Position numbers and translations under genes: made by a program. Under the pieces are notes generated by a model. The model worked only from the letters and a program-made list of their open reading frames with translations. It was not told where the DNA came from and searched no databases. From Macrostomum lignano (taxonomy: Eukaryota): a stretch of 64,000 bases of DNA. The stretch covers positions 1-64,000 of the forward strand of contig NIVC01000831.1 in NCBI GenBank assembly GCA_002269645.1. The letters are read 5' to 3'. Shown piece by piece: positions 3,495 through 49,700 of the stretch; within the stretch, counting starts at the first letter, position 1; each line of letters starts with the position of its first letter.

Positions 3495-14613
<11,119 letters not shown>

Positions 14614-15654: not shown

Positions 15655-17125
15655 GTTACGCCCCACGCCAGCCACAGAAGTGGCCAAAAGGGGGGAGCGT
15701 CAAATCGCGCGTTTCAGAGCTAGGTCTCTAATGTGCTTCACACCGGCCGCCTGGCTGGGTGCTCGCGCATCTTCAAAAAGGCGGTCGACGTAGCGGGCTG
15801 ATCGTCCCTGGCCACGCCTGCGCGGTCCCTGCGGGGTCCACAGCAGGACGTCCTGCAGCGGCTCTGGGCAGTAGGCTTCGGCCCGGATGACATGTCCGGC
15901 CAGCCGCAGGCGCCGCTGACTCAGCAGGGCAGAAGGCCGCGTCAGGCCTGTGCGCTTGTACAGGGACTCGGTTGTCTCGCTGCCAGGGCCGCGGCGGGCG
16001 CCGAAAGCGGCGCGGACTAGGGCCGCATGTGCCGCGTCGAGCTGCGCCTCAAGCGCCCCGGTCAGCGTCCAGGTCTCAGCATTGTGCAGCAGGGCGGTTT
16101 CAACAACCGCCTGGAACAGCTGGGACCTGGCGCCGTCGGACAGGGCCTCGGAGAGCAGCACCGCCAGCACAGATCGGAAGGCAGCCCAGGCCTTGCCGCG
16201 CCGTCTCGCTAGGTCGTCGCCGACGTCCGGCACCAGTCCGCCGAGGTAGACGAACTGAAGGCACTTCGGGAGCGCCGTCCCGGGGCCGTTGCCGTCTCGA
16301 AGTCGAATCTCGGCGGGTAGATCATGCGCAGCAACTTTGCGTACACCTTTGCGACTGCCCTGGGATCCGCGCAGGCGCCAGACTACGCCACCATCAGCTC
16401 AGCCATCACCACTGCCGCTGCTAAAACTCTGCCGCTAATGGAGCCCGCGTCACGGCAACTTCCGGTTTGGACGAGCGACCCGGAGGTCCGAGAGGCCGAG
16501 CAGCTGCGACGAGCCGGGCGACCGACATCCGATGCCGAGAAAGCCCTGGCAGACGCCTACGCTAGTCGACAGCAAGCCGCTGTTGACGACGCAATCAGGG
16601 CGGTCGCCTCCGTTGGGCCTGAACGGCAGAACAGGGTCGTCTGGCCGGTCGTGAACGCCCTAACCGGTCGCAAAAAGAAGACGGCGCTCAACCTGGCTGG
16701 CGACACGGCAAAGAGCGCAGAAACGAGCTGCGCACCTTCTTCGCCGCCATTGTCAACGCGCCGCCGCCGACTCTGCCGAACGAGATGCTGCTGCCCCCGA
16801 GGTGGCGCTGCCGCGGCAGGAGGACTTCGACACCCGTCCTGTGACCAGCACCGACGTCGTGGAATTCGCCCGCAGGGCTCCGGGAGGCCGCGCCCCCGGC
16901 CCGGACGAGGTCCCCGTCGAGGCGCTGCGAGTCACAAGGGTTGCCACTGAGGTGGCCCGCGTGATGAACGGCGTCCTGGCGGGAGGCCCCGCGCCCCGCG
17001 AATGGACCCACGCCAACATCGTCGGCATCCCGAAGAAGCCGGGCACTACACGGAAGGAGGAGCATCGTGGAATCTCGCTCATGTCCTGTACCGCGAAGCT
17101 GTTCAACCGGGTACTACTAGCAGAT
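15611..17125. mobile_element. RTE-like non-LTR retrotransposon relic: 3' part on minus strand with (ATT)n tail, 5' RT-proximal part inverted on plus strand
   Basis: Minus about 16330-15700 encodes FVYLGG...LRLAGHVIR (end of RT and C-terminus), followed by a short UTR and (ATT)n tail at 15654-15611. Plus about 16330-17125 encodes, with frameshifts, APGPDEVP...IVGIPKKPG...RGISLMSCTAKLFNRVL (RT N-terminal domains). Confidence 0.85.
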
Positions 17126-17299
17126 TTATCGGCTGAAGCTGAGGAAAACTTTCTCGCTTAGTGCACAGTGCACAGTAAGTAGAGGGTGCAGAGTTTGAGC
17201 TAACTTTGAGCAGACACAGACGGTAGTGAGGTGCTATAAGAGACGGGGGAGGGGAGATTGGGGAAGAGCAAGCAGTATGAAAGGGTAAGGACTGTATGA

Positions 17300-20570: not shown

Positions 20571-22118
20571 CGGGCCAGTTAAAGCTTGTTTAGATTTGCT
20601 ATTAAGATAATTAGCGAACCGTTACTTGGCATTTGACTTTGCATTCGTCTCGGCGGAAAACATAACTTCTAACACTCCTTTACCCCAAGCCCAACCCTGC
20701 CTTGATTCCTGGCGCAACTATCGATAAGCTTTTATTACTCTGGACTACGAGGCTTAGCTTTCTGCAGCTAAATTCCGAGAGAATTTCAATAGTTTATTAC
20801 TTGCCTTGCTGTTTATCGCATAAGTTATTAATAAGTCAAGTCGTTAGATTTACTCCGGTCGACTTGACTTACTCAACTGATTTGATTAATAAAAATCCTC
20901 GGTTTTTATGTATTCTACATTCAAGTAAGTTTCTCTGCATCGGCTTCTACGACCTATATATTAAACTGCGCTTTGTTCAAGCTGTTCTAAAGTATTAGTA
21001 ATATTTAAAATAAATGTAGGTGACGTTAGTTTAGTTACTTGATGGTTGATAGTACAGTGTCGCCGCAAGAAGGGGGATCGTTTTAAATAGAACACGACAG
21101 AACCTATACAAGGTAGACTTCTTCAAGCAATACAACTACAAGATTGCCGCTGGAGTTGTTATGTTAGAAAAAATATATATCTTGTTAGAGCTAACTTTAT
21201 TATAACTGCACTGCACTCTAATTTTAGTCCATTAGTCCAACGCTCTGACTTTCTCCCGACTCCTTAAGTATTTCTTTATTATTTATCTAAAAAGCAATTA
21301 GATTAATTATCTAAAAAGCATTCCTCAGTCAATCTAAATATACTAAATCTCTAATATTTGTATGCTTGTCCATAACGCTCTAGAGATCGCAATTCTCGAC
21401 CGATTTTGATCGCGTTTTCGCCAAAATTTGAATACTAAAGTCCAAATTCCAAACTTTTCTGTCCGATTCAGAATCTATTTAAATAAAAAGTCTTGACGTC
21501 AATGAATAAGTATTACAGTTCTCCTATCAAGTTTCTATATATATAGCTAAATTCTGTACACGCTACTCTCAGTAGCTTCAATAGGAAAGTTTTCTATTTT
21601 AAACGATATTTTACCGGAGTGTAGATTGTAGAAACAAGTCGCTTTAGCCTCAAAGCAAGACAAGAAGGAGAAAAAAGAAGTTAGCAACGGCAGTTGGTGG
21701 GGGGTGGTATTAGAAGAGGCTGAGACAGGACTGGAAGGTTCCATTGTGGACAATGTACTGACTATACACTTCTGCGCAGTTGAGCTAGAAGAATATTCCA
21801 GAAGCAAAAAATTGCACACAATGTTCTCCTTCGCAACAACTAGCCTCCCCTCCTCCGGCCACCCACCCACCTCCGCAGCTGAGCCAATACCTGCCGATAT
21901 TATAAGAGCCAGCGCACAGTGAGCCGCTGCCCCCATCGATAAACACCCCCCGCAAAAGCATTAACCCTGTCATGCTAACAGTCCTGTCATTGGCAGCAAG
22001 TGTCAGCAGACAGTTAAATACAGTTGGCCGGTTAACTAGTACAACAGCATCTGCGTCAGCAGCAGCAGCAGCTCACCAAAACTCTTCTAAAAGCAAATTT
22101 TCAACTACTAGCGGAAAT

Positions 22119-25100
22119 ATGTACACGCAGTACAAGTGAGTTCTGGCGAGTGTCCAAGCTTACCAGTAGATCTCTATGAATGAAAATCAGTGTTGAGGTT
22201 TGACTAAGTAACACTGCTCTAAGATCTGTAGTTTGTTTAATTGTATGTACTTTTTATAATACAAACACGTGTGCTCTGCATATAGCTGTTTCGTTTGGCA
22301 TTTAATTTCATTTTTTTCTGCTGGCCTTTTTAGTACTAACCAAAACTTGTAACAGTAGTATTCATAACAGCAATAATATAATGTAGCCATTGTGTTTTTG
22401 CTTGCTTCTAACCTAAAAATGAATTAATTATGATAGCTCAGCATGACGCTTGATTGATTAATTGAGACTTACAATAAGTACATACTCTCATTTTTTGATT
22501 CCCGATTCTCCTTCTATTCCATCAAGAGAGCGCATGATGCCCGGTGCATGCGGAGACGGCGTTGACCCATCGGTGGTGTCCTACCTAGAGGAGGGCTACA
22601 AGAAGCTGCAGTCCGACCCCAAGTGCAAGTCCCTGCTAAAGCGTCACCTGACCAAGGATGTGCTTGAGAAGCTCAAGAACAAGAAAACGTCGTTTGGTTC
22701 GACTCTAAAGGATGTGGTGCAGTCTGGTGAGTTTTTTGAGATCAAACTTTTCATTTGTTTTTGTCTGATCTTAGTTTAAATGTAGTTAACCGATTTTTTT
22801 TCCAGGCGTGGAGAACCTGGACTCAGGCGTCGGCGTGTACGCCCCGGACGCGGAAGCGTACTCGGTGTTCGCCGACCTGTTCGACCCGATCATCGAGGAG
22901 TACCACGGCGGCTTCAAGCGCACCGACCGGCACCCGCCGTGCACGCTGGGAGACGCCAGCGAGTTCGGAGACGTGGACCCGGAGGGAAAGTACGTGGTGT
23001 CCACCAGGATCCGGTGCGGCAGGTCGCTGAGAAAGTTCCCGTTCAACCCGAACATGACGGAGGGGCACTACAAGGAGATGGAGGATCTGGTGTCGGGCAC
23101 TCTGAAGGGCATGACGGGAGAGCTGAAGGGCACGTTCTACCCGCTGACCGGGATGACGAAGGAGGTGCAGCAGCAGCTGATTGACGACCACTTCCTGTTC
23201 AAGGAGGGCGACCGGTTCCTGCAGAAGGCGAACGCGTGCCGCTACTGGCCGACGGGCAGGGGCATCTTCCACAACGACAGCAAGACGTTCCTGGTGTGGG
23301 TGGGAGAGGAGGACCACATGCGGATCATCTCGATGCAGAAGGGCGGCAGCATCAGGGAGGTGTACGGCAGGCTGGTGAAGGCGGTGAACGAGATCGAGAA
23401 GCGGATGGAGTTCAGCCACGATGACCGGCTGGGCTTCCTGACGTTCTGTCCGACGAACCTGGGCACCACGATCCGCGCCTCGGTGCACATCAAGCTGCCG
23501 CGGCTGTCGGCGGGAGGCCAGGAGGCCCTGCAGCGGGTGGCCGACCGGTTCCAGCTGCAGGTGCGCGGGTCCGCAGGCGAGCACTCGGAGGCGGTGGGAG
23601 GCCTGTACGACATCTCGAACAAGGAGCGCATGGGCCTGACGGAGTTCGAGGCCGTCGGCAAGATGTACCGCGGCATCGCCGAGCTCATCAAGATGGAGAA
23701 GGCGCTGGAGCGGGGCGTCGACCCGGAGGTGGTGAAGTACGTTGAGGACGGGTTCGCCAAGCTGCAGGCCAGCGACTCGTGCCACTCGCTGCTGAAGAAG
23801 CACCTCACCAAGGAGGTGGTGGACCGGCTGAAGAACCTCAGCACGCCGTCCTTCGGCTCCACGCTCAAGGATGTCATTCAGTCAGGTGATATTTTACTCT
23901 GAATTGGAATTCATATAGTAAATTTTTTTGTTATTTACCTATGGCAATATGGGATGAGCACAGTAAGAAGTTTGTTGGCATTAACGTAGGAAATGAAAGT
24001 TAGCTGAAATTTTCATAATAAGGAAATGTGCCTCTTCACTGCCAATCAAATCTAACCTAAGATTGGACGCCAAGAGCTTACAATTACACTTTTCGTAAAT
24101 TAGGATTCTATATAATAATTGCTTCAACGCTTCTTAATCCGAGGTAGTTGTAGTCTAGTGGGTAGAGCATCGGACTCACGACGGGGGTTCGATTCTCGAC
24201 CCACTGGGAACAATTTGTGTGCTTGAGCAAGACACTTAACTCTACATTGCTTCAGTTCACCCTGCTGTAAAATTGGTGCCAGCATGTGAGAGTCGCCCCT
24301 GAAAGTCGCCATACCCCAGTGAGTCGCCCGTTAGAGTCGCCCCACGTCCCCAGTGAGAGTCGCCCCACGTCCCCAGTGAGAGTCGCCCCACATCCCCAGT
24401 GAGTGTCGCCCCACATCCCCAGTGAGAGTCGCCCCACATCCCCAGTGAGTGCCGCCCCACATCCCCAGTGAGTGTCGCCCCACATTCCCAGTGAGAGTCG
24501 CCCCACATCCCCAGTGAGAGTCGCCCCACATCCCCAGTGAGTGTCGCCCCACATCCCCAGTGAGAGTCGCCCCACATCCCCAGTGAGAGTCGCCCCACAT
24601 CCCCAGTGAGAGTCGCCCCTCATTCCCAGTGAGAGTCGTCCCACATTCCCAGTGAGAGTCGCCCCACATTCCCAGTGAGAGTCGCCCCACATCCCCAGTG
24701 AGAGTCGCCCCACATTCCCAGTGAGAGTCGTCCCACATTCCCAGTGAGAGTCGCCCCACATCCCCAGTGAGAGTCGTCCCACATTCCCAGTGAGAGTCGC
24801 CCCACATTCCCAGTGAGAGTCGCCCCACATTCCCAGTGAGAGTCGCCCCACATTCCCAGTGAGAGTCGTCCCACATTCCCAGTGAGAGTCGTCCCACATT
24901 CCCAGTGAGAGTCGCCCCACATTCCCAGTGAGAGTCGCCCCACATCCCCAGTGAGAGTCGCCCCACATTCCCAGTGAGAGTCGTCCCACATTCCCAGTGA
25001 GAGTCGTCCCACATTCCCAGTGAGAGTCGCCCCACATTCCCAGTGAGAGTCGCCCCACATCCCCAGTGAGAGTCGCTCCACGTCCCCAGTGAGAGTCGCC

Positions 25101-28100
25101 CCACATTCCCAGTGAGAGTCGCCCCACATTCCCAGTGAGAGTCGCCCCACATTCCCAGTGAGAGTCGCCCCACATCCCCAGTGAGAGTCGCCCCACATTC
25201 CCAGTGAGAGTCGCCCCACATTCCCAGTGAGAGTCGTCCCACATTCCCAGTGAGAGTCGCCCCACATTCCCAGTGAGAGTCGCCCCACATTCCCAGTGAG
25301 AGTCGCCCCACATCCCCAGTGAGAGTCGCCCCACATTCCCAGTGAGAGTCGCCCCACATTCCCAGTGAGAGTCGTCCCACATTCCCAGTGAGAGTCGCCC
25401 CACATTCCCAGTGAGAGTCGCCCCACATCCCCAGTGAGAGTCGCTCCACGTCCCCAGTGAGAGTCGCCCCACATTCCCAGTGAGAGTCGCCCCACATTCC
25501 CAGTGAGAGTCGCCCCACATTCCCAGTGAGAGTCGCCCCACATCCCCAGTGAGAGTCGCCCCACATTCCCAGTGAGAGTCGCCCCACATTCCCAGTGAGA
25601 GTCGCCCCACATTCCCAGTGAGAGTCGCCCCACATTCCCAGTGAGAGTCGCCCCACATCCCCAGTGAGAGTCGCCCCACATCCCCAGTGAGAGTCGCCCC
25701 ACATCCCCAGTGAGAGTCGCCCCACATTCCCAGTGAGAGTCGTCCCACATTCCCAGTGAGAGTCGCCCCACATTCCCAGTGAGAGTCGCCCCACATTCCC
25801 AGTGAGAGTCGCCCCACATCCCCAGTGAGAGTCGCCCCACATTCCCAGTGAGAGTCGCCCCACATTCCCAGTGAGAGTCGCCCCACATCCCCAGTGAGAG
25901 TCGCCCAAGATCCCGCACTCCCAATGTAGATAAAGCTCTTTAATAGATTGATTCTCTTGAACATAAAGTGATATGCTTCAGATGCGGAAACAGTTAGAAG
26001 TCACTCGGAGCCATATCTGGTAAATAGGCAGGGTTAAGCAGCTCTTGGAATCCTGCAACTTTCACAGCAGCAGCCTTCGCGATCCTGCTGGAGTGAGCTG
26101 GTGCATTGTCGTGCAGCAGCGCCACACCGCGGGTCAGCATTCCTCGCCGATTTTCCTTGACTGCCTGGCGCAGACGAGCGATCAAGTCAGCTTAGTAGAC
26201 CCCTGCGACTGTCTGCTTGTGCAGTAGAAAGTCCAGCAGCAACGGACCCTTTGAATCGTAGAAGACTGTCAGCATTATCTTGCCAGCAACGCTTGCAGTC
26301 CTCGCCTTCAGAGGTGCTGGTGATCCAACTGGCAGCCACTGCTTGGATTCTGGATCGTGGTGGTCTGGATCCACGACGTCTCATGCCGCGAGCTCCCTGA
26401 CTTTGATGCGGCGAATGTTTTCAGCCGTGACAGCCGCGTCCACATCGCAGATCGTCTTCGAGCGATGTTTGATGCTGGGGTATGAGGGGGCAGCCCAGCA
26501 TACACATCAGCCATGTGACTGTGAATTTCTGCAGGCTTTGAGCCCTCATGCCTGATGTAGACTTTTGGAACAGTTATGTGAGCTGGAGTTTTGGAGCTTT
26601 AATGTTTAGGGATTTTTGTCAGGCTCAGATGAAACTTTCGTAGTGCCCCTCGTAGTTCTCTCCTTATCTAGTATTTTTAATTGTCAATGAAACTAGGTGT
26701 TTACAGGCTTCTGATTCTAAGGCTTCGTCAATCTTCACTGAGCCTTCAAACTCAATCAATGATTCATAGCATTTTTCTCAGCTGCTATTCACTTCCTTAA
26801 TCCCCTTCCTCTTCCCAGGCGTGGAGAACCTGGACTCGGGCGTCGGCGTGTACGCCCCGGACGCGGAGGCGTACTCGGTGTTCGCCGACCTGTTCGACCC
26901 GATCATCGAGGAGTACCACGGCGGCTTCAAGCGCACCGACCGGCACCCGCCGTGCACGCTGGGAGACGCCAGCGAGTTCGGAGACGTGGACCCGGAGGGA
27001 AAGTACGTGGTGTCCACCAGGATCCGGTGCGGCAGGTCGCTGAGAAAGTTCCCGTTCAACCCGAACATGACGGAGGGGCACTACAAGGAGATGGAGGATC
27101 TGGTGTCGGGCACTCTGAAGGGCATGACGGGAGAGCTGAAGGGCACGTTCTACCCGCTGACCGGGATGACGAAGGAGGTGCAGCAGCAGCTGATTGACGA
27201 CCACTTCCTGTTCAAGGAGGGCGACCGGTTCCTGCAGAAGGCGAACGCGTGCCGCTACTGGCCGACGGGCAGGGGCATCTTCCACAACGACAGCAAGACG
27301 TTCCTGGTGTGGGTGGGAGAGGAGGACCACATGCGGATCATCTCGATGCAGAAGGGCGGCAGCATCAGGGAGGTGTACGGCAGGCTGGTGAAGGCGGTGA
27401 ACGAGATCGAGAAGCGGATGGAGTTCAGCCACGATGACCGGCTGGGCTTCCTGACGTTCTGTCCGACGAACCTGGGCACCACGATCCGCGCCTCGGTGCA
27501 CATCAAGCTGCCGCGGCTGTCGGCGGGAGGCCAGGAGGCCCTGCAGCGGGTGGCCGACCGGTTCCAGCTGCAGGTGCGCGGGTCCGCAGGCGAGCACTCG
27601 GAGGCCGTGGGAGGCCTGTACGACATCTCGAACAAGGAGCGCATGGGCCTGACGGAGTTCGAGGCCGTCGGCAAGATGTACCGCGGCATCGGCGAGCTCA
27701 TCAAGATGGAGAAGGCGCTGGAGCGGGGCGTCGACCCTGAGGTGGTGAAGTACGTCGAGGACGGGTTCGCCAAGCTGCAGGCCAGCGACTCGTGCCACTC
27801 GCTGCTGAAGAAGCACCTCACCAAGGAGGTGGTGGACAGGCTGAAGAACCTCAGCACGCCGTCCTTCGGCTCCACGCTCAAGGACGTCATTCAGTCAGGT
27901 GAGTGGCGCACCTTTCTAGATATCGGCTTCAAGGATGAGTTTGAAACTCGAGCCCTAGCATTATTTTGAGCCTATTCGTGATTAGGGCTCATAACTTGGG
28001 TTTTTCACTCTGTCTAGCTCTGCACGCAATAGGTCGCTGCACCTGTTCGGCCCCTAATCACTAGCTGGCTGGCTTTTGTGCATAAAAGCCAATGCGTCTC

Positions 28101-31100
28101 GCTAATTGGCGCCTATTGCACTCGCTCGGCTGGGCGGAACAGCTCAAGATTTTGACTTCGATTTGCGCCGGCATTGTTTTCCTGTCTGTCTGTGCGAGTG
28201 CAGTTAGCCTACCTGTTGTATCTTGTCTAATTGTAGCGTTTCTACCTGTGGGCTAGGTGTATGCAGATTGTGCATGTCTGCGTCACGTGACACTAGCCTT
28301 GCATTTTTGCTATTATCTGCGGAAGAATAGAAATGCTTTTAAGTATAGCTCTGGAATCAGATTTCATTTTGCATCAAAAGTTGCTATATGTGTGTTATAC
28401 CTGTCCTGATGGTGTGTCGCCTCATACAGTTTGTCTCACCTGATGTGTCTCCTGACATGTCTCACCTGATGTGTCTCCTTACATGCCTCACCTGATGTGT
28501 CTCATATGCCTCACCTGATGTGTCTCATATGCCACACCTGATGTGTCTAATATGCCTCACCTGATGTGTCTCCTCACATGTCTCACCTGATGTGTCTCAT
28601 ATGCCTCACCTGATGTGTCTCATATGCCTCACCTGATGTGTCTAATATGCCTCACTTGATGTGTCTCCTCACATGTCTCACCTGATGTGTCTCATATGCC
28701 TCACCTGATGTGTCTAATATGCCTCACTTGATGTGTCTCCTCACATGTCTCACCTGATGTGTCTCATATGCCTCACCTGATGTGTCTAATATGCCTCACT
28801 TGATGTGTCTCCTCACATGTCTCACCTGATGTGTCTCATATGCCTCACCTGATGTGTCTAATATGCCTCACTTGATGTGTCTCCTCACATGTCTCACCTG
28901 ATGTGTCTCATATGCCTCACCTGATGTGTCTAATATGCCTCACTTGATGTGTCTCCTCACATGTCTCACCTGATGTGTCTCATATGCCTCACCTGATGTG
29001 TCTAATATGCCTCACTTGATGTGTCTCCTCACATGTCTCACCTGATGTGTCTCATATGCCTCACCTGATGTGTCTAATATGCCTCACTTGATGTGTCTCC
29101 TCACATGTCTCACCTGATGTGTCTCATATGCCTCACCTGATGTGTCTAATATGCCTCACTTGATGTGTCTCCTCACATGTCTCACCTGATGTGTCTCCTC
29201 ATATGCCTCACCTGATGTGTCTAATATGCCTCACTTGATGTGTCTCCTCACATGTCTCACCTGATGTGTCTCATATGCCTCACCTGATGTGTCTAATATG
29301 CCTCACTTGATGTGTCTCCTCACATGTCTCACCTGATGTGTCTCATATGCCTCACCTGATGTGTCTAATATGCCTCACTTGATGTGTCTCCTCACATGTC
29401 TCACCTGATGTGTCTCATATGCCTCACCTGATGTGTCTAATATGCCTCACTTGATGTGTCTCCTCATATGCCACACCTGATGTGTCTCCTCATATGCCAC
29501 ACCTGATGTGTCTCCTCATATGCCACACCTGATGTGTCTCCTCATATGCTACACCTGATGTGTCTCCTCATATGCTACACAGCCTACACTTACCTGATAT
29601 TTCTAAATATCCCACTGACCTGAAATCCCTGCTGAGATCTCGTACCAGATTCCTCCGCGTGCGTACCCACTCGTGTATTTTCATCATAAATCTCGGTTAG
29701 CATCCCAGCCTGACTCAGCTTATGCTTGTATTCTACCAGAGCCTCTGCAGCAGAGCAAATAAAAAAGGATATTTTGCCACTCATCGCTACTGAGCCTCAT
29801 TCCTCCAGATATTTTTGCATATTTTGAAAAAATAAGCTGCTTGCCTTTGCATCTTTGCTCAGCTAAATTGCTTTTATGGCGGGGATGACAAAGCCTGAAC
29901 TGCTGCCCCAATGCAACTGTGGATAGCGTGACTCGCCCCCACCCCTATGCGCCATCGAGACCGGCTGCTTTCATAGCCAATTCCCTCGGAATTAGCATAT
30001 TCGCTAAACACAGGATTCTCAATCAATTGAAATTGCTCCAACTCTTCTGCGAGATAATTTTACAAGAAATATTACTTTACCCTTCTCCAGAATTCCGTGA
30101 CTAATCTACAGTTCACTTCCTTTATCCCCTCCCCTTCCCAGGCGTAGAGAACCTGGACTCGGGCGTCGGCGTGTACGCCCCGGACGCGGAGGCGTACTCG
30201 GTTTTCGCGGACCTGTTCGACCCGATCATCGAGGAGTACCACGGCGGCTTCAAGCGCACCGACCGGCACCCGCCGTGCACGCTGGGAGACGCCAGCGAGT
30301 TCGGAGACGTGGACCCGGAGGGAAAGTACGTGGTGTCCACCAGGATCCGGTGCGGCAGGTCGCTGAGAAAGTTCCCGTTCAACCCGAACATGACGGAGGG
30401 GCACTACAAGGAGATGGAGGATCTGGTGTCGGGCACTCTGAAGGGCATGACGGGAGAGCTGAAGGGCACGTTCTACCCGCTGACCGGGATGACGAAGGAG
30501 GTGCAGCAGCAGCTGATTGACGACCACTTCCTGTTCAAGGAGGGCGACCGGTTCCTGCAGAAGGCGAACGCGTGCCGCTACTGGCCGACGGGCAGGGGCA
30601 TCTTCCACAACGACAGCAAGACGTTCCTGGTGTGGGTGGGAGAGGAGGACCACATGCGGATCATCTCGATGCAGAAGGGCGGCAGCATCAGGGAGGTGTA
30701 CGGCAGGCTGGTGAAGGCGGTGAACGAGATCGAGAAGCGGATGGAGTTCAGCCACGATGACCGGCTGGGCTTCCTGACGTTCTGTCCGACGAACCTGGGC
30801 ACCACGATCCGCGCCTCGGTGCACATCAAGCTGCCGCGGCTGTCGGCGGGAGGCCAGGAGGCCCTGCAGCGGGTGGCCGACCGGTTCCAGCTGCAGGTGC
30901 GCGGGTCCGCAGGCGAGCACTCGGAGGCGGTGGGAGGCCTGTACGACATCTCGAACAAGGAGCGCATGGGCCTGACGGAGTTCGAGGCCGTCGGCAAGAT
31001 GTACCGCGGCATCGGCGAGCTCATCAAGATGGAGAAGGCGCTGGAGCGGGGCGTCGACCCGGAGGTGGTGAAGTACGTCGAGGACGGGTTCGCCAAGCTG

Positions 31101-34100
31101 CAGGCCAGCGACTCGTGCCACTCGCTGCTGAAGAAGCACCTCACCAAGGAGGTGGTGGACAGGCTGAAGAACCTCAGCACGCCGTCCTTCGGCTCCACGC
31201 TCAAGGACGTCATCCAGTCAGGTGAGTGGGCGCATTATCTACCTGAAACTACATGGCATTTAGTCTTGAACTAATTATTAATTTCCTGCATTCTGCTGGC
31301 TGTGCCATCCTAACTGCCGCCCTCCGCCGCAAATTGTCCAGCACCTGGGGCTCTCGAGTTACAGTCGAGCAGACCCTCCCCCCTGCGGTGCCTACTCAAG
31401 CCGTTCCAACTACTTAGCTAATAGTGTGTGATGACGCCATTGAGTTTTAGTTTGCTTTGCCCTCTTATCACTTTGTATTCTGTCTGCAGTTCCATACCCC
31501 TGGGACTCTCCGTTGTTAAGCGGGTTTTTTTTACCTTATATATATTTAACCTAGCACCTGGCTTTTCTTGGATTTCTGTTTATTGCCCTGCCTCACAGTC
31601 TCAGCCACTAAAGTGTGCTTCGAAGCTGTAGTGCAGTGTGGTAGGATGCTATTTAGCATAATAGAATAATTTTGCTTTGCCAACCTCTCTGCTTCAAAGC
31701 TTTAGACTTGAAGAGAATTGAAATGCCTGCCTGCACCCGCTCAGGCTATAGGCTGGATTGGGTAAGCGATTCAGTGAGCAGCAGGCCCTGCAGTGTCGTT
31801 GCCTGTTATTTTCCGGTCTCTCTCTCCCTATCGCACTGCTGTACTCTCTGTCCCGCATGTCTCTCTAGACTCTCCGCCCTTGTTACCATGGCAACCATTT
31901 CTATCAGCAGGGAGACTCTGTCTTTGCCGACCGACTGAGAAATATTCTAGGGCCAGTGGGCGAGTACCCATGCAGGTGTGTCTCATAGACGCCCTGTTTC
32001 ACAAAATATTAAACTATAAACACTAACAATATTGAGTGTCTGAGAATGCTTTACTTGCATTTTAATTTACTTTGTACTGTAAACGGCATTTCGATTAATG
32101 TAGAAATGCTCTTGGTTAAATAAAAAATATGTGACTATAGTTCAAATACCATAGTATGATAGTGCTTATCCTATCGAATTCTCTAGTTGAAAATTTATTT
32201 AGCAATTTAGAATGTATCTCTGAACAATCATACTACTGACAGAGTCTTATCACTAGTAATAACTTCCTGATTGTTAGAGATCAATTAATTAAAGGGGTAC
32301 TGGCAATATTAGTCTTCAATCTTCATGCATGGGGGGCATCGCAAAACCGAAATATCACAAACCCGAAATATCATAACTCCAAAAGTTGTATTTTGGCTTT
32401 GGGATTTACGAATATGATATTTCGGGGCTGTGATATTTTGGGTTGTGATATTTCGGGTTGTGATATTTCGGGTTTGTGATATTTCGGGTTGTGATATTTC
32501 GGGGTTGTGATATTTTCGGTTGTGATATTTCGGGTTGTGATATTTCAGGTTGTGATATTTCGGGTTGTGATATTTCAGGTTTGTGATATTTCAGGTTGTG
32601 ATATTTTGGGTTGTGATATTTCGGGTTTGTGATTTTTCAGGTTTGTGATATTTCGGGTTGTGATATTTCAGGTTGTGATATTTCGGGTTGTGATATTTTG
32701 GGTTGTGATATTTCGGGTTGTGATATTTTGGATTGTGATGTTTTGGGTTTGTGATATTTCTGGTTGTGATATTTCGGGTTGTGATATTTCAGGTTTGTGA
32801 TATTTCGGGTTGTGATATTTTGGGTTGTGATATTTCGGGTTTGTGATATTTCAGATTTGTGATATTCGGGTTGTGATATTTCGGGTTGTTATATTTCGGG
32901 TTGTGATATTTTGGGCTGTGATATTTCGTTGTGATATTTCGGGTTGTGATATTTCGGGTTGTGATATTTCAGGTTTGTGATATTTCGGGTTGTGATATTT
33001 TGGGTTGTGATATTTCGGGTTTGTGATATTTCAGATTTGTGATATTCGGGTTGTGATATTTCGGGTTGTTATATTTCGGGTTGTGATATTTTGGGCTGTG
33101 ATATTTCGTTGTGATATTTCGGGTTGTGATATTTCGGGTTGTGATATTTTGGGCTGTGATATTTGTTGTGATATTTCGGGTTGTGATATTTCAGGTTGTG
33201 ATATTTGGGGTTGTGATATTTCGGGTTTGTGATATTTCGGGTTGTGATATTTCGTTGTGATATTTCGGTTTTGTGATATTTCAGGTTTGTGATATTTCGG
33301 GTTTGTGATATTTCTGGTTGTGATATTCGGGTTGTGATATTTCGTTGTGATATTTCGGGTTGTGATATTTCGTTGTGATATTTCGGGTTGTGATATTTCG
33401 GGTTGTGATATTTCGTTGTGATATTTCGGGTTGTGATATTTCGGGTTTGTGATATTTTGGGTTGTGATATTTCGGGTTGTGATATTTCGGGTTGTGATAT
33501 TTCAGGTTTGTGATATTTCGGGTTGTGATATTTCGGGTTGTGATATTTCGGGTTGTGATATTTCGGGTTGTGATATTTTGGGCTGTGATATTTGTTGTGA
33601 TATTTCGGGTTGTGATATTTCAGGTTGTGATATTTGGGGTTGTGATATTTCGGGTTTGTGATATTTCGGGTTGTGATATTTCGTTGTGATATTTCGGTTT
33701 TGTGATATTTCAGGTTTGTGATATTTCGGGTTTGTGATATTTCTGGTTGTGATATTCGGGTTGTGATATTTCGGGGTTGTGATATTTCGTTGTGATATTT
33801 CGGGTTGTGATATTTCGGGTTGTGATATTTCGTTGTGATATTTCGGGTTGTGATATTTCGGGTTTGTGATATTTTGGGTTGTGATATTTCGGGTTGTGAT
33901 ATTTCGGGTTGTGATATTTCAGGTTTGTGATATTTCGGGTTGTGATATTTCGGGTTGTGATATTTTGTTGTGATATTTCGGGTTTGTGATATTTTGGGTT
34001 GTGATATTTCGTTGTGATATTTCGGGTAGTGATATTTCGGGTTTTGATGTTTTGGGTTTTGATGTTTGGGTTTGTGATATTTCGGGTTGTGATATTTCGG

Positions 34101-35149
34101 GTTGTGATGGTGACCCCATTTAAGAGAAACAGACGTAAACGTTTCCATTGAATAATCTGTCTGCACGACGGTCTGTCTGTGTGTCTGTGTGTCTGTCACA
34201 TCTGTTACAATTTACAATTCCACAAAATACCCCAGGCGTTGAGAACCTGGACTCGGGCGTCGGCGTGTACGCCCCGGACGCGGAGGCGTACTCGGTGTTC
34301 GCTGACCTGTTCGACCCGATCATCGAGGAGTACCACGGCGGCTTCAAGCGCACCGACCGGCACCCGCCGTGCACGCTGGGAGACGCCAGCGAGTTCGGAG
34401 ACGTGGACCCGGAGGGAAAGTACGTGGTATCCACCAGGATCCGGTGCGGCAGGTCGCTGAGAAAGTTCCCGTTCAACCCGAACATGACGGAGGGGCACTA
34501 CAAGGAGATGGAGGATCTGGTGTCGGGCACTCTGAAGGGCATGACGGGAGAGCTGAAGGGCACGTTCTACCCGCTGACCGGGATGACGAAGGAGGTGCAG
34601 CAGCAGCTGATTGACGACCACTTCCTGTTCAAGGAGGGCGACCGGTTCCTGCAGAAGGCGAACGCGTGCCGCTACTGGCCTACGGGCAGGGGCATCTTCC
34701 ACAACGACAGCAAGACGTTCCTGGTGTGGGTGGGAGAGGAGGACCACATGCGGATCATCTCGATGCAGAAGGGCGGCAGCATCAGGGAGGTGTACGGCAG
34801 GCTGGTGAAGGCGGTGAACGAGATCGAGAAGCGGATGGAGTTCAGCCACGATGACCGGCTGGGCTTCCTGACGTTCTGTCCGACGAACCTGGGCACCACG
34901 ATCCGCGCCTCGGTGCACATCAAGCTGCCGCGGCTGTCGGCGGGAGGCCAGGAGGCCCTGCAGCGGGTGGCCGACCGGTTCCAGCTGCAGGTGCGCGGGT
35001 CCGCAGGCGAGCACTCGGAGGCCGTGGGAGGCCTGTACGACATCTCAAACAAGGAGCGCATGGGCCTGACGGAGTTCGAGGCCGTCGGCAAGATGTACCG
35101 CGGCATCGGCGAGCTCATCAAGATGGAGAAAGAACTCGAGGCGAAGTGA
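22119..35149 (+). CDS. Four-domain arginine (phosphagen) kinase, about 1456 aa, 6 exons
   Basis: Exons 22119-22135, 22527-22726, 22806-23885, 26819-27898, 30142-31221, 34236-35149; all GT-AG and in frame, total 4371 nt. Each domain has [48 protein letters not shown]. The 17-nt first exon is the least certain part. Confidence 0.9.
22806..23885 (+). CDS. Arginine kinase exon 3 (1080 nt: C-terminal part of domain 1 plus N-terminal part of domain 2)
   Basis: tccag|GC GTG acceptor and CAG TCA G|gtgata donor; phase 1 at both ends. Confidence 0.93.
24143..24283 (+). mobile_element. tRNA-derived SINE with CORE-like domain, arginine kinase intron 3
   Basis: A box tagtctagtgggtagag, B box ggttcgattc, then gtgtgcttgagcaagacacttaac...ttcagttcaccctgctgtaaaattgg, which resembles the CORE consensus as I recall it. 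Confidence 0.65.
24285..25906. repeat. 23-bp minisatellite (tcccagtgagagtcgccccacat)n
   Basis: Direct tandem array; 23-aa periodicity in the minus-strand ORFs. Confidence 0.96.
25945..26652 (-). mobile_element. Degenerate, internally deleted mariner relic
   Basis: Frameshifted fragments [35 protein letters not shown]; terminal sequence cgaggggcactacgaaagtttc preceded by TA at 26653-26654 on the minus strand. Confidence 0.85.
26819..27898 (+). CDS. Arginine kinase exon 4 (1080 nt: domain 2 C-part plus domain 3 N-part)
   Basis: cttcccag|GC GTG acceptor and TCA G|gtgagt donor; near-identical to exons 3 and 5. Confidence 0.93.
28420..29580. repeat. Compound minisatellite with a 72-bp higher-order unit (26+23+23 bp), arginine kinase intron 4
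   Basis: Three related subunits starting tgatgtgtct recur in fixed order; 72-nt periodicity seen (for example 28681 vs 28753). Confidence 0.92.
30142..31221 (+). CDS. Arginine kinase exon 5 (1080 nt: domain 3 C-part plus domain 4 N-part)
   Basis: cttcccag|GC GTA acceptor and TCA G|gtgagt donor. Confidence 0.93.
32325..34125. repeat. 15/16-bp array (tgtgatatttcgggt)n with inverted copies at its left end, arginine kinase intron 5
   Basis: Main array about 32420-34105; inverted units aaccgaaatatcacaaacccgaaatatca at about 32345-32375. Confidence 0.9.
34236..35149 (+). CDS. Arginine kinase terminal exon 6 (domain 4 C-part, ends KELEAK*)
   Basis: cccag|GC GTT acceptor; the only repeat copy with an in-exon stop codon. 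Confidence 0.93.
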
Positions 35150-37031
35150 GCGGCCTGGCTGGATTGAAGTCTTCAAGATTCCAAGATTGACTGCTGTAAC
35201 GGCTAAATGCGAGCTTTGAAGACTGAAACTGTTAACACATGTTCATTTCTCAATCAAAACATTTCCTTCGTAAGCAAAGTTTTCTGTTAAATTTACACAT
35301 TCTGAAAAAAACTATAGTTAATTCTGGAATATTTGAATCTTTATTTAGGTAAATCATTAAAAACTGAGCTGCAGTAGCATTGCTATGCCTAGCCTTTATA
35401 GTTTCTCGTACACTCTAAATTAAAATTTATACTCAACGCACACGCAGATAGAAGTCTTGTTTTTTTCTTGTTTCCTAAACTTCTACTTTAAATAGTGTTG
35501 TAGGTTTTTTGTCCTCTTTATATTAGCAGTGACTCATTTGAAAGTTTTTTGAAAACGTAGTTTCTGTTTCAGCTAAGTTCATAATCTGTTATAGTAATTA
35601 ATGTCTCTTTTAGCACAGGTAAATAGAAATGGTTAGAGTAAATTTCTATTCTCCGTTCTCTAAGTAAATTATAGCTACTTAAAGTAATATATAATCATGC
35701 GCCTAGCTATTTTTGTTTAAATAATCAAAATATATTGTATAACATCGTAACACAGTTTCACTGTTTTGTTAATTTGATAAAGACGTCGCGAGAAGTTCTG
35801 TAACTCTCAAAATTATCGACATGTTGTGGCTTGCTTTTGGATTTAAGGATTACTTTGAAGGATTTGGGAAGCGCCGTAATAATTGGCGACAGTCGAGCAG
35901 CAGACAAGAGAGTGGACCCCTGAGCACGCACATGTATAATGTATAGTGCCTAGATTCTCGAGACATTCTCGTCATCGCATGTACATGTAATGTACGGATA
36001 TGTTATTACATGTATATGTATGCGCTTTGGGATTCATCCTCTGAGCAGAGGTGTTGACTCGCGCTACAAACGCTAGTATAGGTAGAATAAATGCGAACGC
36101 ACAGTGAAAAGGAAACCAGGTAAGTCTGCTGCGAGAGTTCAAAAGAATTGTATTACTTTTACTACCGTACGGCTCGTCCGTCTGCCCTGTCAATTTATGT
36201 ACTTTTGGTTTTGATTAATTTTTATGATACACTTTTGTTCGTTTGCTCTATGCTAAAAATGGCTAAAAATGAGTTGTCTCCGGGTAACTCATTACCAAGG
36301 TGGGTATCTGTGGTTTATTTATTTCAGAAATGATACCATTGTTGAACCAAGGACTATATAACTAAGTGTTCCTAGTGGTCCTTGTGTTGAACTTTTAGTT
36401 CTTCGAGCATGATAAGTTCAATAAAAGCTGGGCAACATATTGTCTTAAAAAGAGAGCCAAAAAAGCAGTGCTATTTTTATTTTATGTAGTTTCGTAACAG
36501 CTTTACTTACGGCATTTCTGTTTTCAATTAGAAGTAAAAAGATGGCCTTTTATAATATATTTTGTTTATAATATAATGACGCATTTTAAATGCTTGTTTC
36601 GTGATTTTGCAAGAAATGCAGCTTTCTGTATTGTAAATGCCTAGCGCCGTGGCGCTTTTAGTTGTATGATTGTATCCTATATGAATGAGAGATTATTTTT
36701 ATGGTTATTATTTTGCAAATAATTCTAACCAAAGAAATTCATATATTGACTCTTGACTGGAAAGTCAAGCCTACTACTACTAGTTGGCAGTTGCCTTCCT
36801 TCAGCGTTCAGCTTCAGCCTAAGCTTAGACTCAGAGCTCTGCTGAGTCAGACTGTAGTGTAGGCCTCTAGTCGTGTGTGTAGGCACTGACTGCCTATAGC
36901 AAATCTGTCATAACTCTCAGTGCTTTCACTATCTAGGATAAGCGGCCTATGCAAAGGAATTTTTGTTAACCTAACCTTTATTGGTAAGAAATTAAATTCT
37001 AGCTTGTTTACTTTAATGTAAGCAATTTAAT

Positions 37032-40000: not shown

Positions 40001-43000
40001 TATAAACCAAAGCTGGCTGCAAAACATGTGTCAAATATGACAAATTGTCACAGAAAACTGCTGCTCATTCTAGATCAAGGGCATCAAAATCCCCTCTCAC
40101 CTTTGCACCCCCTACCCTTCCCTCAACTTTGGTTTATAATCATTTCCACACATGCACTCCACTAAAATGATTATAAACCAAAGCTGGCAATATGACCTCT
40201 ATCATAAGTGCATGTGCTAAAGGCTAAACAAACACAGATTTTTGGTCAAGCTAAGTATTGAGTTGATACTTGGTGCTTATGTCAAGTAGTCAAGAAATTT
40301 CAGTAATTTGCACATTTTTATGTAGCATTCTCTATAGTCACACTATCATAGTATCATTTCATAAAAAGATTTATATGAATATATTGTATTATAAACAATT
40401 TATATATTTTTTAAAATGTTTTTGATACTTAAGTTATTAAGAAATAATAAATTTGTTTATATGGGTCATTCCACAAGAGTTTTTTTTTACTTTGACTTTC
40501 TAACAATTAATTCTATGAAACAAGGGCTGCAGCACTGAGTTTTCCAGCTGAGTTGTGATTGCCAAATATGACATCCATATCTCCAGGAGTGTCCAGCAGT
40601 TGTCACAGCTTGTTAGCTGGCCAAATTCTTGTACAAGGATCTAAAGAAAAAAGTGATAATATTTCTAGTTAGTGTTCTATTCAGTTTTTGTATAAAAATA
40701 CCAAGATGTGCGCAACAATAAAACTTATACAATTGTTACAAAAGAAAAACGCCATGCTAAAATTTCATTGCCATTTTGATATTTCCTATATTAAAAAGCA
40801 TATTTACCCCATATTATCTATATATGCATAATTAAAAAATACTAAAATTTCTCAATTTGACTTGAATAAAATTTCTCGATAGTCAATTAGTTGAAAAAAT
40901 AGTCAATTACTTGACATGTCAAGTACTACTTAGTCAAGTACTCGTTCGGCCTCTAGTATGTGCATTACATACAATATTAATTTTAACCTAGCTTTGGTTC
41001 ATAATAATATCTATGTGCCTTGCACATTCAAATGATTCTATACCAAAGCTGATATTCAAACATCATCTAACAAACTGTAACTTTCCCATTAAATTTTGGG
41101 TATTTTTTTGTCAGCCAGTTTTGAACACGCCATTTTTGCACTGCAATGAGCAAAATATAAGGTGATTGTAAACTAAAACTAGCAATTTTTAAGTCTTTGC
41201 TTCTCAAATATTATTAAAAGGAAAAAGACCCTCAACAATTAATTGCTTAAAAGCTTTTACATATTTATATAGTTCACATGTAGCAACAAATAAATGAATA
41301 TGAAATACAATTCATATAAGGCATATTTGTATTACATAATAAACAGCTTTAAGTTTAAATTAGTAGTAAAATTTAATTACAATTACAACAGTAACTTTAA
41401 TTTGATTAAGTTCTGGGGTTTTTTCGTCCATAACTTGGGTGCAATTTCGCACCCTGTGCTAGATTTCAAGGTGCAATTTTCAAGACCAGGATGTGCTGCA
41501 CTGCTGCCGACAAAAACTGGTCTAACATAACACTACTCGATGTCCATATCACTAAATTGTGAAATCCGCATCACATCCTTGCAAAAGATTCTGGTGCGCT
41601 TTTTGCATCATGAGTCAAATTTCAGGGTGCAATTTTTAAAACCAGGATGCTATTCTCACCCATTTGCACAAATAACCCAGATTAAGTTACATTAGGAGTA
41701 AATTCAAATTATAACCAATAAATTTTGCATTATAATGATATAGAAACATAATATTGTAACAATAAAACAACAAGAAAACTAGAGATTGGATAAATACCTT
41801 TATTGTGCACAAGCATAACATTTTGTGATTTCATTTTTGTTATACATGAATATAATTGTGATCATGAAAATGATTTTCATATTATATACATATATTACAT
41901 TAGATACAAAATATACACATTAAAACAAAATAAAGTAAAAATATGTGAATGTGCTCTTAGACTTGGATAAAGAGTTCAAACTTGCAAGATTATTTGTTCT
42001 ATTCTAACTCTTGGAATATATATTAAGACATATTTATTTGGTTTTTAGCTTTTACAAATCATATATTATGGCATAACTATTCAAATGTCAAGGCTAAAAT
42101 TACAAGTATGATTACATTTAATTATATATCATAGAGTTTGTTTGGGATACTTCGGGTGTGTCATAAGTAATGTCACTGCAGGCTTCTGTCTAAAATATGT
42201 AGGCACATGGACTTGTGGGTAGCGTAGCTGCAAAGTATACTTAGTGAAGCAATAGCAGTGCATTTGAGACGTGCATAGGTTGTTTATGGCCCAAGCTATC
42301 GCAAGAATACGCCAAGCAGATTTAGCAAGTGCAACGCGATGAAAAATCATCTATGCAGTGAACAAAAATCACCATGAATCTCGACATGACGCCTGCACCA
42401 AGCAGATCCGCAAGGTGTTTAGCAGCCGGGGCTTGAATGACATCCTAAACTGCCTGGTTGCTGAGGATGAAAGCTGGCTCCACCTGGATGGCAAGGGCAG
42501 CAAGGCAGATAATCGCTGCTGGTTGGGAGCTGGGGACTTCAGGCCGATGGTGACTAGGAAGTCCATCTTGGACAAGAAGACCATGCTGCTGGTAGCCTTC
42601 ACGCCAAACAAACGAGTCTCCATCTGCACAACTCCACCGAACACCAAAGTCGATGGCCAGTACTTTATCGACTTTGTCCGGCACACTGGGGACCTCTGGC
42701 GCAATCTCCGGTCAAATCCATGTCACCTGGACGAGGTTCTGTGGCAGATGGACACTGCACGGCCGCACACCTGTAAGGCTTTTTCGAATTTTCTGCCTGC
42801 ACGGCAGTCGGCAAGTGAATATGCTCTGACAGTCCCTACAGCCCAGACTTCAACTTGTGCAAAAGATTCCTGTTCAAATGGCTGAAGGCTGAATTTTCCA
42901 AGAAGAGTTTCGCAAACCATGAAGAAGTCAAACAGGCCGCGTTGCACTGGTTACGGCAGTTGGAGGAAAAACACCTGTAGGCTGAGGTGGACAGGCTGTA

Positions 43001-48200: not shown

Positions 48201-48429
48201 GAATGCGATCGATCCTCATCAACTTGTACTGAATAAATAATCTTGCACTTTTTGCATCTTGCGCACAATTAGCTCACCTACTCTTGATGTTTTTGATGCT
48301 TTTGAAGGCTTAGATTAAAAAACCATGTGTTTTGCTTCCTTAGTTAGAACTGCTCATTCGGACAAACCCGTTGAAAACGGTACAGGCTAAAGAGTCATTG
48401 CAAACAACTCACTCAAGTGACTCTACGCC

Positions 48430-49700
48430 GACTCTAGCAGCTCTGTGGCGACTCTAGTGACTCTAAGGCGATTAGCACTTAGCAGCTCTGGGGCGACTGT
48501 AGTGACTCTAGGGCGACTGTAGTGACTCTAGGGAGATTAGCACTTAGCAGCTCTAGTGACTCTAGGGCGATTAGCACTTAGCAGCTCTAGGGTGACTCTA
48601 GTGACTCTAGGGCGACTGTAGTGACTCTAGGGCGACTGTAGTGACTCTAGGGCGACTGTAGTGACTCTAGGGCGACTGTAGTGACTCTAGGGCGACTGTA
48701 GTGACTCTAGGGCGACTGTAGTGACTCTAGGGCGACTGTAGTGACTCTAGGGCGACTGTAGTGACTCTGGGGCGACTCTAGTGACTCTGGGGCGACTGTA
48801 GTGACTCTAGGGCGACTGTAGTGACTCTAGGGCGACTGTAGTGACTCTATTGCGACTGTAGTGACTCTAGGGCGACTGTAGTGACTCTAGGTCGATTAGC
48901 ACTTAGCAGCTCTAGGGTGACTCTAGTGACTCTAGGTCGTCTGTAGTGACTCTAGGGCGACTGTAGTGACTCTAGGGCGACTGTAGTGACTCTAGGGCGA
49001 CTGTAGTGACTCTAGGTCGACTGTAGTGACTCTAGGTCGACTGTAGTGACTCTAGGGCGACTGTAGTGACTCTAGGGCGACTGTAGTGACTCTAGGGCGA
49101 CTGTAGTGACTCTAGGGCGACTGTAGTGACTCTAGGGCGACTGTAGTGACTCTAGGGCGACTGTAGTGACTCTAGGGCGACTGTAGTGACTCTAGGGCGA
49201 CTGTAGTGACTCTAGGTCGACTGTAGTGACTCTAGGTCGACTGTAGTGACTCTAGGGCGACTGTAGTGACTCTAGGTCGATTAGCACTTAGCAGCTCTAG
49301 GGTGACTCTAGTGACTCTATGGCAACTCTAGTGACTCTATGGCAACTCTAGTGACTCTATGGCAACTCTAGTGACTCCATGGCAACTCTAGTGACTCTAT
49401 GGCAACTCTAGTGACTCTATGGCAACTCTAGTGACTCTATGGCAACTCTAGTGACTCTAGGGCGACTCTAGTGACTCTAGGGCGACTCTAGCAACTCTGG
49501 GATGACTCTAGCAACTCTGGGGAAACTCTAGCAACTCTGGGGCGACTAGCAACTCTGGGCGACTAGCAACTCTGGGGCGATTCTAGTGAGTCTATGGCAA
49601 CTCTAGTGACTCTAGGGCAACTCTAGTGACTCTATGGCAACTCTAATGACTCTAGGGCAACTCTAGTGACTCTAGGGCAACTCTAGTGACTTTTTAACGA
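48430..49700. repeat. 20-bp minisatellite (gtgactctagggcgactgta)n
   Basis: Direct tandem array with variant blocks. Confidence 0.94.

Follow-up and report, generated by a model that had tools for sequence, protein, structure and literature searches.

We examine a 64,000-nucleotide (nt) stretch of DNA of the flatworm Macrostomum lignano (contig NIVC01000831.1, positions 1 to 64,000, called the window below; eukaryotic, GC content 46%), which contains a gene for a predicted four-domain arginine kinase (AK). The four large exons of this gene are almost identical to each other, and the long introns between them share no bulk similarity. We will argue that the exon copies have probably been kept almost identical by repeated homologous exchange, mainly gene conversion, and we weigh this explanation against a recent duplication, an artefact of assembly polishing, homogenization by RNA copies of the gene, and selection on synonymous sites.

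The gene and its product

The gene lies on the forward strand at 22534-35149. It has five coding exons with canonical gt/ag splice sites, and when these are joined an open coding sequence of 4347 nt is obtained, with 1448 amino acids (aa) and a single terminal stop. The labels E3 to E6 of the four large exons are kept from an earlier, sequence-only reading of this DNA. That reading had numbered them as the third to the sixth exon, but only one coding exon (22534-22726, here exon A) was found upstream of them, and they are thus coding exons 2 to 5. An untranslated exon may be present upstream of exon A. The parts of the gene are the following, with a slash marking the splice site within a motif:

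22534-22726, + strand: exon A, from the ATG to ...DVVQSG, encoding the N-terminal 64 aa of domain 1; phase 1 at its end, donor G/gtgagt
22727-22805, + strand: intron 1, 79 nt, gt...ag, at the conserved VIQSG/VENLD position
22806-23885, + strand: exon E3, 1080 nt, encoding the body of domain 1, the linker and the N-terminal 57 aa of domain 2
23886-26818, + strand: intron I3, 2933 nt
26819-27898, + strand: exon E4, 1080 nt, coding for the domain 2 body and then the N-terminus of domain 3
27899-30141, + strand: intron I4, 2243 nt
30142-31221, + strand: exon E5, 1080 nt, coding for the domain 3 body and then the N-terminus of domain 4
31222-34235, + strand: intron I5, 3014 nt, GC content 0.39
34236-35149, + strand: exon E6, the last one, coding for the domain 4 body with the ancestral C-terminus ...KMEKELEAK and the TGA stop; its high identity to E3-E5 reaches to exon position ca 895

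The architecture is that of a contiguous four-domain arginine kinase in one gene. In each 1080-nt exon, the coding sequence for one domain body continues, with no spacer, into that for the first 57 residues of the next domain, and the exon ends at the conserved intron position. A single intron of 78 nt, in phase 1, lies at exactly this codon in the single-domain AK gene of M. lignano (VIQSG/IENLD). The sole intron position, shared with this single-domain relative, is thus found in the N-terminal part of every domain. Exons E3, E4 and E5 are in phase 1 at both ends and have lengths that are multiples of three, and E6 begins in phase 1. Skipping E3, E4 or E5 therefore keeps the reading frame, isoforms with one, two or three domains are equally in frame, and exon A joined directly to E6 is predicted to give a canonical 368-aa kinase.

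Judging from the sequence, the four exons would be spliced into one messenger RNA (mRNA). No transcript or protein of the same species was found in the protein collection searched. Two other arrangements were considered and rejected. Exons E3 to E5 cannot be mutually exclusive alternatives, as they have no stop codon and each of them ends in the N-terminus of the next domain, so that another body exon must follow. Separate genes joined by trans-splicing are not viable either, since an mRNA begun at any of the large exons would have neither the N-terminal domain nor a start codon.

The product belongs to the phosphagen kinases. In a two-domain excerpt, the Pfam families PF02807 (N-terminal) and PF00217 (catalytic) match over their full length, in two stretches each, with expectation values (E) of 7.5e-65 and 8.7e-152. 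Motifs of this family are the reactive-cysteine motif CPTNLGT, the acidic motif EEDH and the N-terminal substrate loop SGVG.YAPD. Each of them occurs four times in the translated protein with an exact period of 360 aa, namely CPTNLGT at 279/639/999/1359, EEDH at 232/592/952/1312, and the loop, as SGVGVYAPD, at 71/431/791/1151. The nearest proteins are arginine kinases, with the M. lignano single-domain enzyme at 83% identity and a Logan transcript from SRR7428099 at 86%; the best matches, which come from free-living flatworms and arthropods, are annotated as arginine kinase and are 71-86% identical. The enzyme is therefore most probably an arginine kinase, acting on arginine rather than on creatine or taurocyamine.

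A fusion of peroxiredoxin and AK, as known in some relatives, was also considered, but tblastn finds no peroxiredoxin part in the window. Such fusions (AhpC-TSA / 1-cysPrx_C joined to arginine kinase) are present in the JGI and Logan proteins P0007, P0012 and P0032, which are 75-77% identical to the kinase of the window. As for the single-domain AK gene of M. lignano, it is found on the contigs NIVC01001210.1 and NIVC01001845.1, 100% identical over 1191 nt (both exons and the 78-nt intron), and tetraspanin genes lie upstream of it on both contigs. This is consistent with recently duplicated or uncollapsed regions of the assembly.

Exon copies and introns compared

When one copy (26701-28100, which also finds itself) is searched against the window by blastn, the other three are returned at 22799-23889, 30112-31234 and 34231-35130, with 99.1-99.4% identity. 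In pairwise comparisons by the Nei-Gojobori method, the copies have 5-9 synonymous differences over ca 207-252 sites, corresponding to a synonymous divergence (dS) of 0.024-0.040, and the nonsynonymous divergence (dN) is at most 0.001. At four-fold degenerate sites, they differ at 4-7 of 143-175 positions, with 0-2 changes between G and C. The single amino-acid difference is due to an alanine codon (GCC) in E3 at 23679, where E4, E5 and E6 have a glycine codon (GGC; 27692, 31015 and 35109). This change from Gly to Ala is one of six differences private to E3, and E6 has private differences deep in the repeat, at exon positions 194, 446 and 812; the variable sites number 16 in all. The outer copies E3 and E6 hold most of the private differences, as is expected at the ends of an array. 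The homogeneity of the exons is thus confirmed and is far beyond chance, and the sequence-only reading was right in stating that the copies are nearly identical even at synonymous sites and have one amino-acid difference in their shared part.

We now turn to the introns. Comparison of I3, I4 and I5 by blastn (word size 7, E up to 10) gives a sole match, which is between the last 30-31 nt of I3 (26788-26818) and of I4 (30112-30141), at 90% identity with two substitutions and one indel. By inspection and in an alignment, ca 13 nt are also shared by the starts of I4 and I5. The 3' end of I5 has no relationship to those of I3 and I4. On both sides of E3, and on the 5' side of E6, the identity collapses within at most 4 nt of the splice sites, such that only the splice consensus is shared. 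The repeats identified in the introns are:

24147-24285, + strand: in I3, a transfer-RNA-derived element resembling a short interspersed nuclear element (SINE), ca 140 nt, with a box-B-like motif GGTTCGATTCTCGACC and a conserved core
24333-25906: in I3, a minisatellite with a 23-mer unit, 68 copies
28435-29566: in I4, a minisatellite with a 72-mer unit, 15.6 copies
32415-34108: in I5, a minisatellite with a 15-mer unit, 113 copies

Outside its minisatellite, every long intron also holds at least about 1 kb of unique sequence. The earlier statements that the introns share no bulk similarity and carry different repeats, and that the splice flanks pair E4 with E5 (the second and third large exons), are consequently upheld. 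The M. lignano contigs NIVC01001210.1 and NIVC01001845.1 contain four copies of the SINE-like element, to which the one in I3 has 85% identity; for an element derived from transfer RNA and with a conserved core, this is weak evidence on taxonomy. An Rfam scan of 22000-36000 gave only a sub-threshold microRNA match in the 15-mer minisatellite, with 35.7 bits versus a gathering score of 136, which is taken as chance.

The proposed repeated exchange and the competing explanations

The gene has an internal clock, which can be used to judge how alike the copies ought to be. The segment encoded by exon A has a homologous counterpart, called A', at the 3' end of E3 to E5. Under any domain-fusion scenario, A/A' and the kinase bodies were duplicated together and should be equally old. 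However, exon A and A' have a dS of 0.8 and a dN of 0.31 (69% nucleotide identity) and differ at 14 of 22 four-fold sites, with seven of these differences being between G and C, whereas the kinase bodies differ by a dS of only 0.03. The copies are thus more alike than the clock allows. Exon A itself is single-copy and shows no homogenization; it matches the N-terminus of the M. lignano single-domain AK at 67% (tblastn). The dS of the exon copies to the M. lignano AK gene is 1.8.

An old divergence is also kept at the end of E6. Compared to E4, there are five differences in 895 nt, followed by four in the last 12 homologous bases (33%; AAG GCG CTG GAG versus AAA GAA CTC GAG). Beyond this point the two sequences are unrelated, with the stop codon and the 3' untranslated region on one side and the linker on the other. 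Conversion tracts need homologous DNA on both sides, which would account for the divergence being retained here.

The differences are furthermore not spread evenly. None of the 12 sites that vary among E3, E4 and E5 lies between exon positions 69 and 787; all of them fall either in the 68 nt next to the 5' edge or in the 292 nt next to the 3' edge. On average they are 91 nt away from the closest edge of the exon, while ca 270 nt would be expected (permutation p about 1e-5), and the invariant run of 720 nt has a p of about 2e-5. This clustering at the edges, which the sequence-only reading had also noticed, is contrary to the even distribution that would follow from one duplication and subsequent independent decay.

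Finally, the GC content at third codon positions (GC3) is 0.94-0.95 in the repeated exons as compared to 0.73 in exon A (Fisher test, 2e-6), and that of A' is 0.93 (p = 0.007 versus exon A). Two single-domain relatives have values of 0.72-0.78 with no gradient from the N-terminus to the body, and the other open reading frames (ORFs) of the window have 0.47-0.65. Since all exons of one mRNA are equally expressed, the excess belongs to the repeated unit. It is, as predicted, a sign of long-acting GC-biased gene conversion.

On the basis of these results, we propose that the four exon copies have been homogenized by repeated exchange, chiefly non-crossover and GC-biased conversion, taking place within the chromosome or between sister chromatids, an explanation that we hold with moderate confidence. 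The conversion tracts would have to start and stop in homologous DNA, which would consist of the exons only, plus a few tens of bases beside E4 and E5. With the homology limited in this way, homogenization would be strongest in the exon core, weaker near the edges and absent from the introns, and the latter would have diverged long ago, with each of them growing independently through the gain of minisatellites and a SINE. The main process is probably conversion and not crossover. An unequal crossover would duplicate or delete an intron, and no two of the long introns are alike, so this haplotype bears no record of a recent expansion by crossover. A deletional crossover, for example near position 895, could have produced the present E6.

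It is important to point out that a number of observations weigh against this proposal. The mosaic pattern that the sequence-only reading had invoked is one of them. The pairing at the GCG/GCC site does exist (G, C, G and C at 23593, 27606, 30929 and 35023, so that E3 equals E5 and E4 equals E6), but the argument drawn from it is weak, as this single G/C site is the only fully parsimony-informative one, two further sites group E3 with E4, and a GENECONV-type test is powerless with four sequences. The flanks of E4 and E5 are ca 10% diverged compared to 0.55% for the exon (p = 0.0015), but their 3 differences in 31 nt are not significantly above the synonymous 6 in 252 (p = 0.06). The likeness of these flanks is more plausibly a remnant of the first duplication than a sign of conversion. 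The E4/E5 pair, with 31 nt upstream and ca 13 nt downstream in common, could even stem from a fairly recent tandem duplication with breakpoints near the exon. Intron I4 combines the 5' end of I5 with the 3' end of I3, and such a hybrid intron is what a tandem exon duplication with nearby breakpoints is expected to leave. Moreover, the ancestral intron was probably only ca 80 nt long, and most of the unrelatedness of the introns is then inserted material rather than diverged homologous DNA; their informative parts are the few tens of bases beside each splice site. Lastly, polishing of a long-read assembly by short reads would also yield clustering of the differences at the edges.

Several of these points can be assembled into a recent duplication followed by intron bloating, in which a two-domain ancestor with short (ca 50-80 nt) inter-domain introns was expanded to four domains at a dS of about 0.03. 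The introns were in this case separately filled by minisatellites, the SINE and other insertions, and small deletions erased the flanks beside E3 and E6. Intron 1 with its 79 nt and the 78-nt intron of the M. lignano gene make a short ancestral intron plausible, the ca 24 independent minisatellite arrays of the window indicate that new arrays form readily, the hybrid I4 is as a tandem duplication of E4/E5 predicts, and the flank divergence is, as stated, not significantly above the synonymous one. However, it leaves unexplained the difference-free central 720 nt, the 33% divergence at the end of E6 next to 99.4% identity upstream, the contrast between A/A' and the bodies, and the restriction of the high GC3 to the repeated unit. 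It also requires that indels near position +5 of I3 and position -5 of I5 left splicing intact, and has to account for the unique sequence in each long intron. We therefore regard it as unlikely. The polishing artefact, according to which the real exons differ by a few percent and multi-mapped short or RNA-derived reads have erased the differences in the core, appears still less probable. Its strength is that the differences remaining among E3 to E5 all lie no farther than 70 nt from the 5' edge or ca 290 nt from the 3' edge, a distance that reads or read pairs could cover from an anchor in the unique flanks, and long-read assemblies of flatworms are routinely polished with 150-nt reads (an example is PMC9469890). 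The private differences of E6, on the other hand, persist deep in the repeat, and the contig resolves minisatellites of 1.1-1.7 kb with unit-to-unit variation, implying reads that span each 1.1-kb exon and both of its unique flanks. The GC3 excess, the A/A' contrast and the missing intron similarity cannot arise by polishing, and since reads would multi-map only between copies with about 95% identity or higher from the outset, the main phenomenon would survive in any case.

We have also considered that the donor for repair was RNA-templated, that is, complementary DNA (cDNA) of the spliced mRNA or of a back-spliced circular exon RNA, with homogenization ending at the splice junctions. The four-domain gene is probably highly expressed. 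The abrupt end of identity at the splice sites on both sides of E3 and on the 5' side of E6 agrees with an RNA-templated donor, and so does the fact that each domain body is a single exon, which fits a lineage with cDNA-mediated intron loss. But tracts across exon-exon junctions would delete introns, and all introns are kept; DNA conversion limited by homology gives the same boundaries, together with the edge gradient, and needs no extra mechanism. A cDNA donor and a DNA donor are not distinguished by the sequence, and we consider the RNA-templated route to be a slim possibility. Purifying selection on synonymous sites, i.e. extreme codon bias in a highly expressed gene with no exchange at all, would agree with the high GC3 of the repeated exons but is largely refuted and deserves hardly any credence. 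Four-fold changes between G and C are neutral with respect to GC3, and yet only 0-2 of about 175 are seen between the copies as compared to 7 of 22 between A and A'. The dS of 1.8 to the M. lignano gene and the GC3 of 0.73 in exon A of the same transcript likewise speak against such a constraint. Finally, an artefact of haplotype duplication was rejected, because a duplicated haplotype would contain copies of the introns as well, which is not the case. Repeated exchange confined to the exons, rather than one recent duplication or a simple duplication in the assembly, is what the sequence-only reading had suggested; the internal clock, the end of E6, the edge clustering and the GC3 values all support it.

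Related systems and the surrounding sequence

Contiguous two-domain arginine kinases occur in the sea anemone Anthopleura japonicus and in the clams Pseudocardium, Corbicula, Ensis and Calyptogena, with the two units separated by a 'bridge' intron. Like the gene studied here, they carry complete AK domains head to tail on one polypeptide, as a result of duplication and fusion. Here, however, there are four domains with bodies that are essentially identical at the DNA level, and each body is one exon, with the boundary shifted such that the exon spans the domain junction. These enzymes of the anemone and of clams are cited in PMC11492440 (refs 16 and 33) and PMC3018575 (refs 29 and 30). A beetle locus, of Asbolus verrucosus (QDEB01071628.1, 5864-9142), also has two AK units that stand head to tail, with ca 2.1 kb between them, and its annotation gives a single partial multi-domain protein; unlike the present exons, the units have only 76% DNA identity over 1185 nt and show no homogenization.

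More than two contiguous phosphagen-kinase domains, formed by repeated duplication of the whole unit, are also found in the three-domain flagellar creatine kinase of sea-urchin and annelid sperm, reportedly described by Wothe et al. in 1990 and Suzuki et al. in 2004. That enzyme is, by contrast, a creatine kinase with many exons per domain. As far as we know, the domains of that enzyme have clearly diverged from each other, and in comparisons across species they cluster by position, indicating an old triplication with no homogenization. Two-domain taurocyamine or guanidino kinases are known from the trematodes Schistosoma, Paragonimus and Clonorchis (PMC3836730, PMC3018575). Like the present enzyme, these are phosphagen kinases of flatworms that descend from AK and have contiguous domains formed by duplication, but they are parasite enzymes with another substrate, a deletion in the guanidino-specificity region and diverged domains, and they are not close in sequence.

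Regarding the process, concerted evolution limited to coding sequence by homology-bounded conversion is known from the Drosophila Amy duplicates, the primate gamma-globin genes and the Hsp70 pairs. In these cases, as here, the repeats are more alike than their age implies, the likeness stops sharply at non-homologous flanks, and the GC content rises in the tracts. The difference is that the repeats are here exons of one gene, each encoding a whole domain, and the spacers are the introns of that gene. Tandem gene arrays of trypanosomes, arginine kinases included, have also been described (PMC1855330). The mechanism is hence of a known type, and the locus is a clear intragenic example of it rather than a new class.

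We found no report of a four-domain arginine kinase, or of conversion in multi-domain AKs, in a literature whose coverage was incomplete and contained only two-domain cases. To our knowledge, the contiguous phosphagen kinases described so far have two or three domains but not four, and the number of domains is likely a record for this enzyme family. An orthologous multi-domain gene was found neither in the protein collection, queried with the whole exon unit and with the domain junction, nor in metagenome contigs, queried with the junction peptide; the protein searches gave only single-domain relatives and distant multi-domain kinases.

The locus is of interest because it contains its own controls, namely the unconverted exon A, the preserved end of homology at the 3' side of E6, and introns that record no recent unequal crossover. 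A single sequence therefore allows one to read both how edges affect conversion tracts and how biased conversion shifts GC3. It is also a caution for gene prediction and expression analysis, as a short-read transcriptome assembly would collapse such a gene to a single domain. The number of domains could vary, through exon skipping or through changes in copy number. Near-identical exons with phase 1 at both ends might in this way allow kinases with one, two, three or four domains, and selection could then favor identical modules.

The rest of the window is rich in repeats. Its GC content (about 0.46) is not in keeping with that of the flatworm Prostheceraeus crozieri (0.376). The ca 24 minisatellite arrays lie between 236 and 62233, are unrelated to each other, have units of 14-33 nt and lengths of 0.3-3.5 kb, and make up roughly a third of the window. 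They are found both in introns and between genes, each with its own unit, examples being 6893-10357, 12319-14359, 48411-49691, 52401-53628 and 60706-62233. In two 21-kb loci of M. lignano, no minisatellites were found at a comparable Tandem Repeats Finder score.

Apart from the kinase gene and the arrays, the following features were observed:

1429-2529, + strand: transposase ORF of the mariner/Mos1 type, 367 aa, with the Pfam domains HTH_48, Transposase_1 and DDE_3
15703-17158: GC-rich block (0.61) with long ORFs on both strands, resembling by eye the degenerate reverse transcriptase of a retrotransposon lacking long terminal repeats (non-LTR), with no Pfam match
42343-42882, + strand: 180-aa ORF, similar by eye to a mariner transposase, with no Pfam match
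43496-46040: exons of an ankyrin-repeat gene (Pfam Ank, Ank_2), with a 31-mer minisatellite of 40 copies at 43796-45036 between two ORF blocks
62313-62681, + strand: C-terminal exon of a synaptobrevin-type SNARE (PF00957, E 4e-15), ending ...NRCCTLL

For the last of these, the sequence suggests that the product is a lipid-anchored, Ykt6-like protein.

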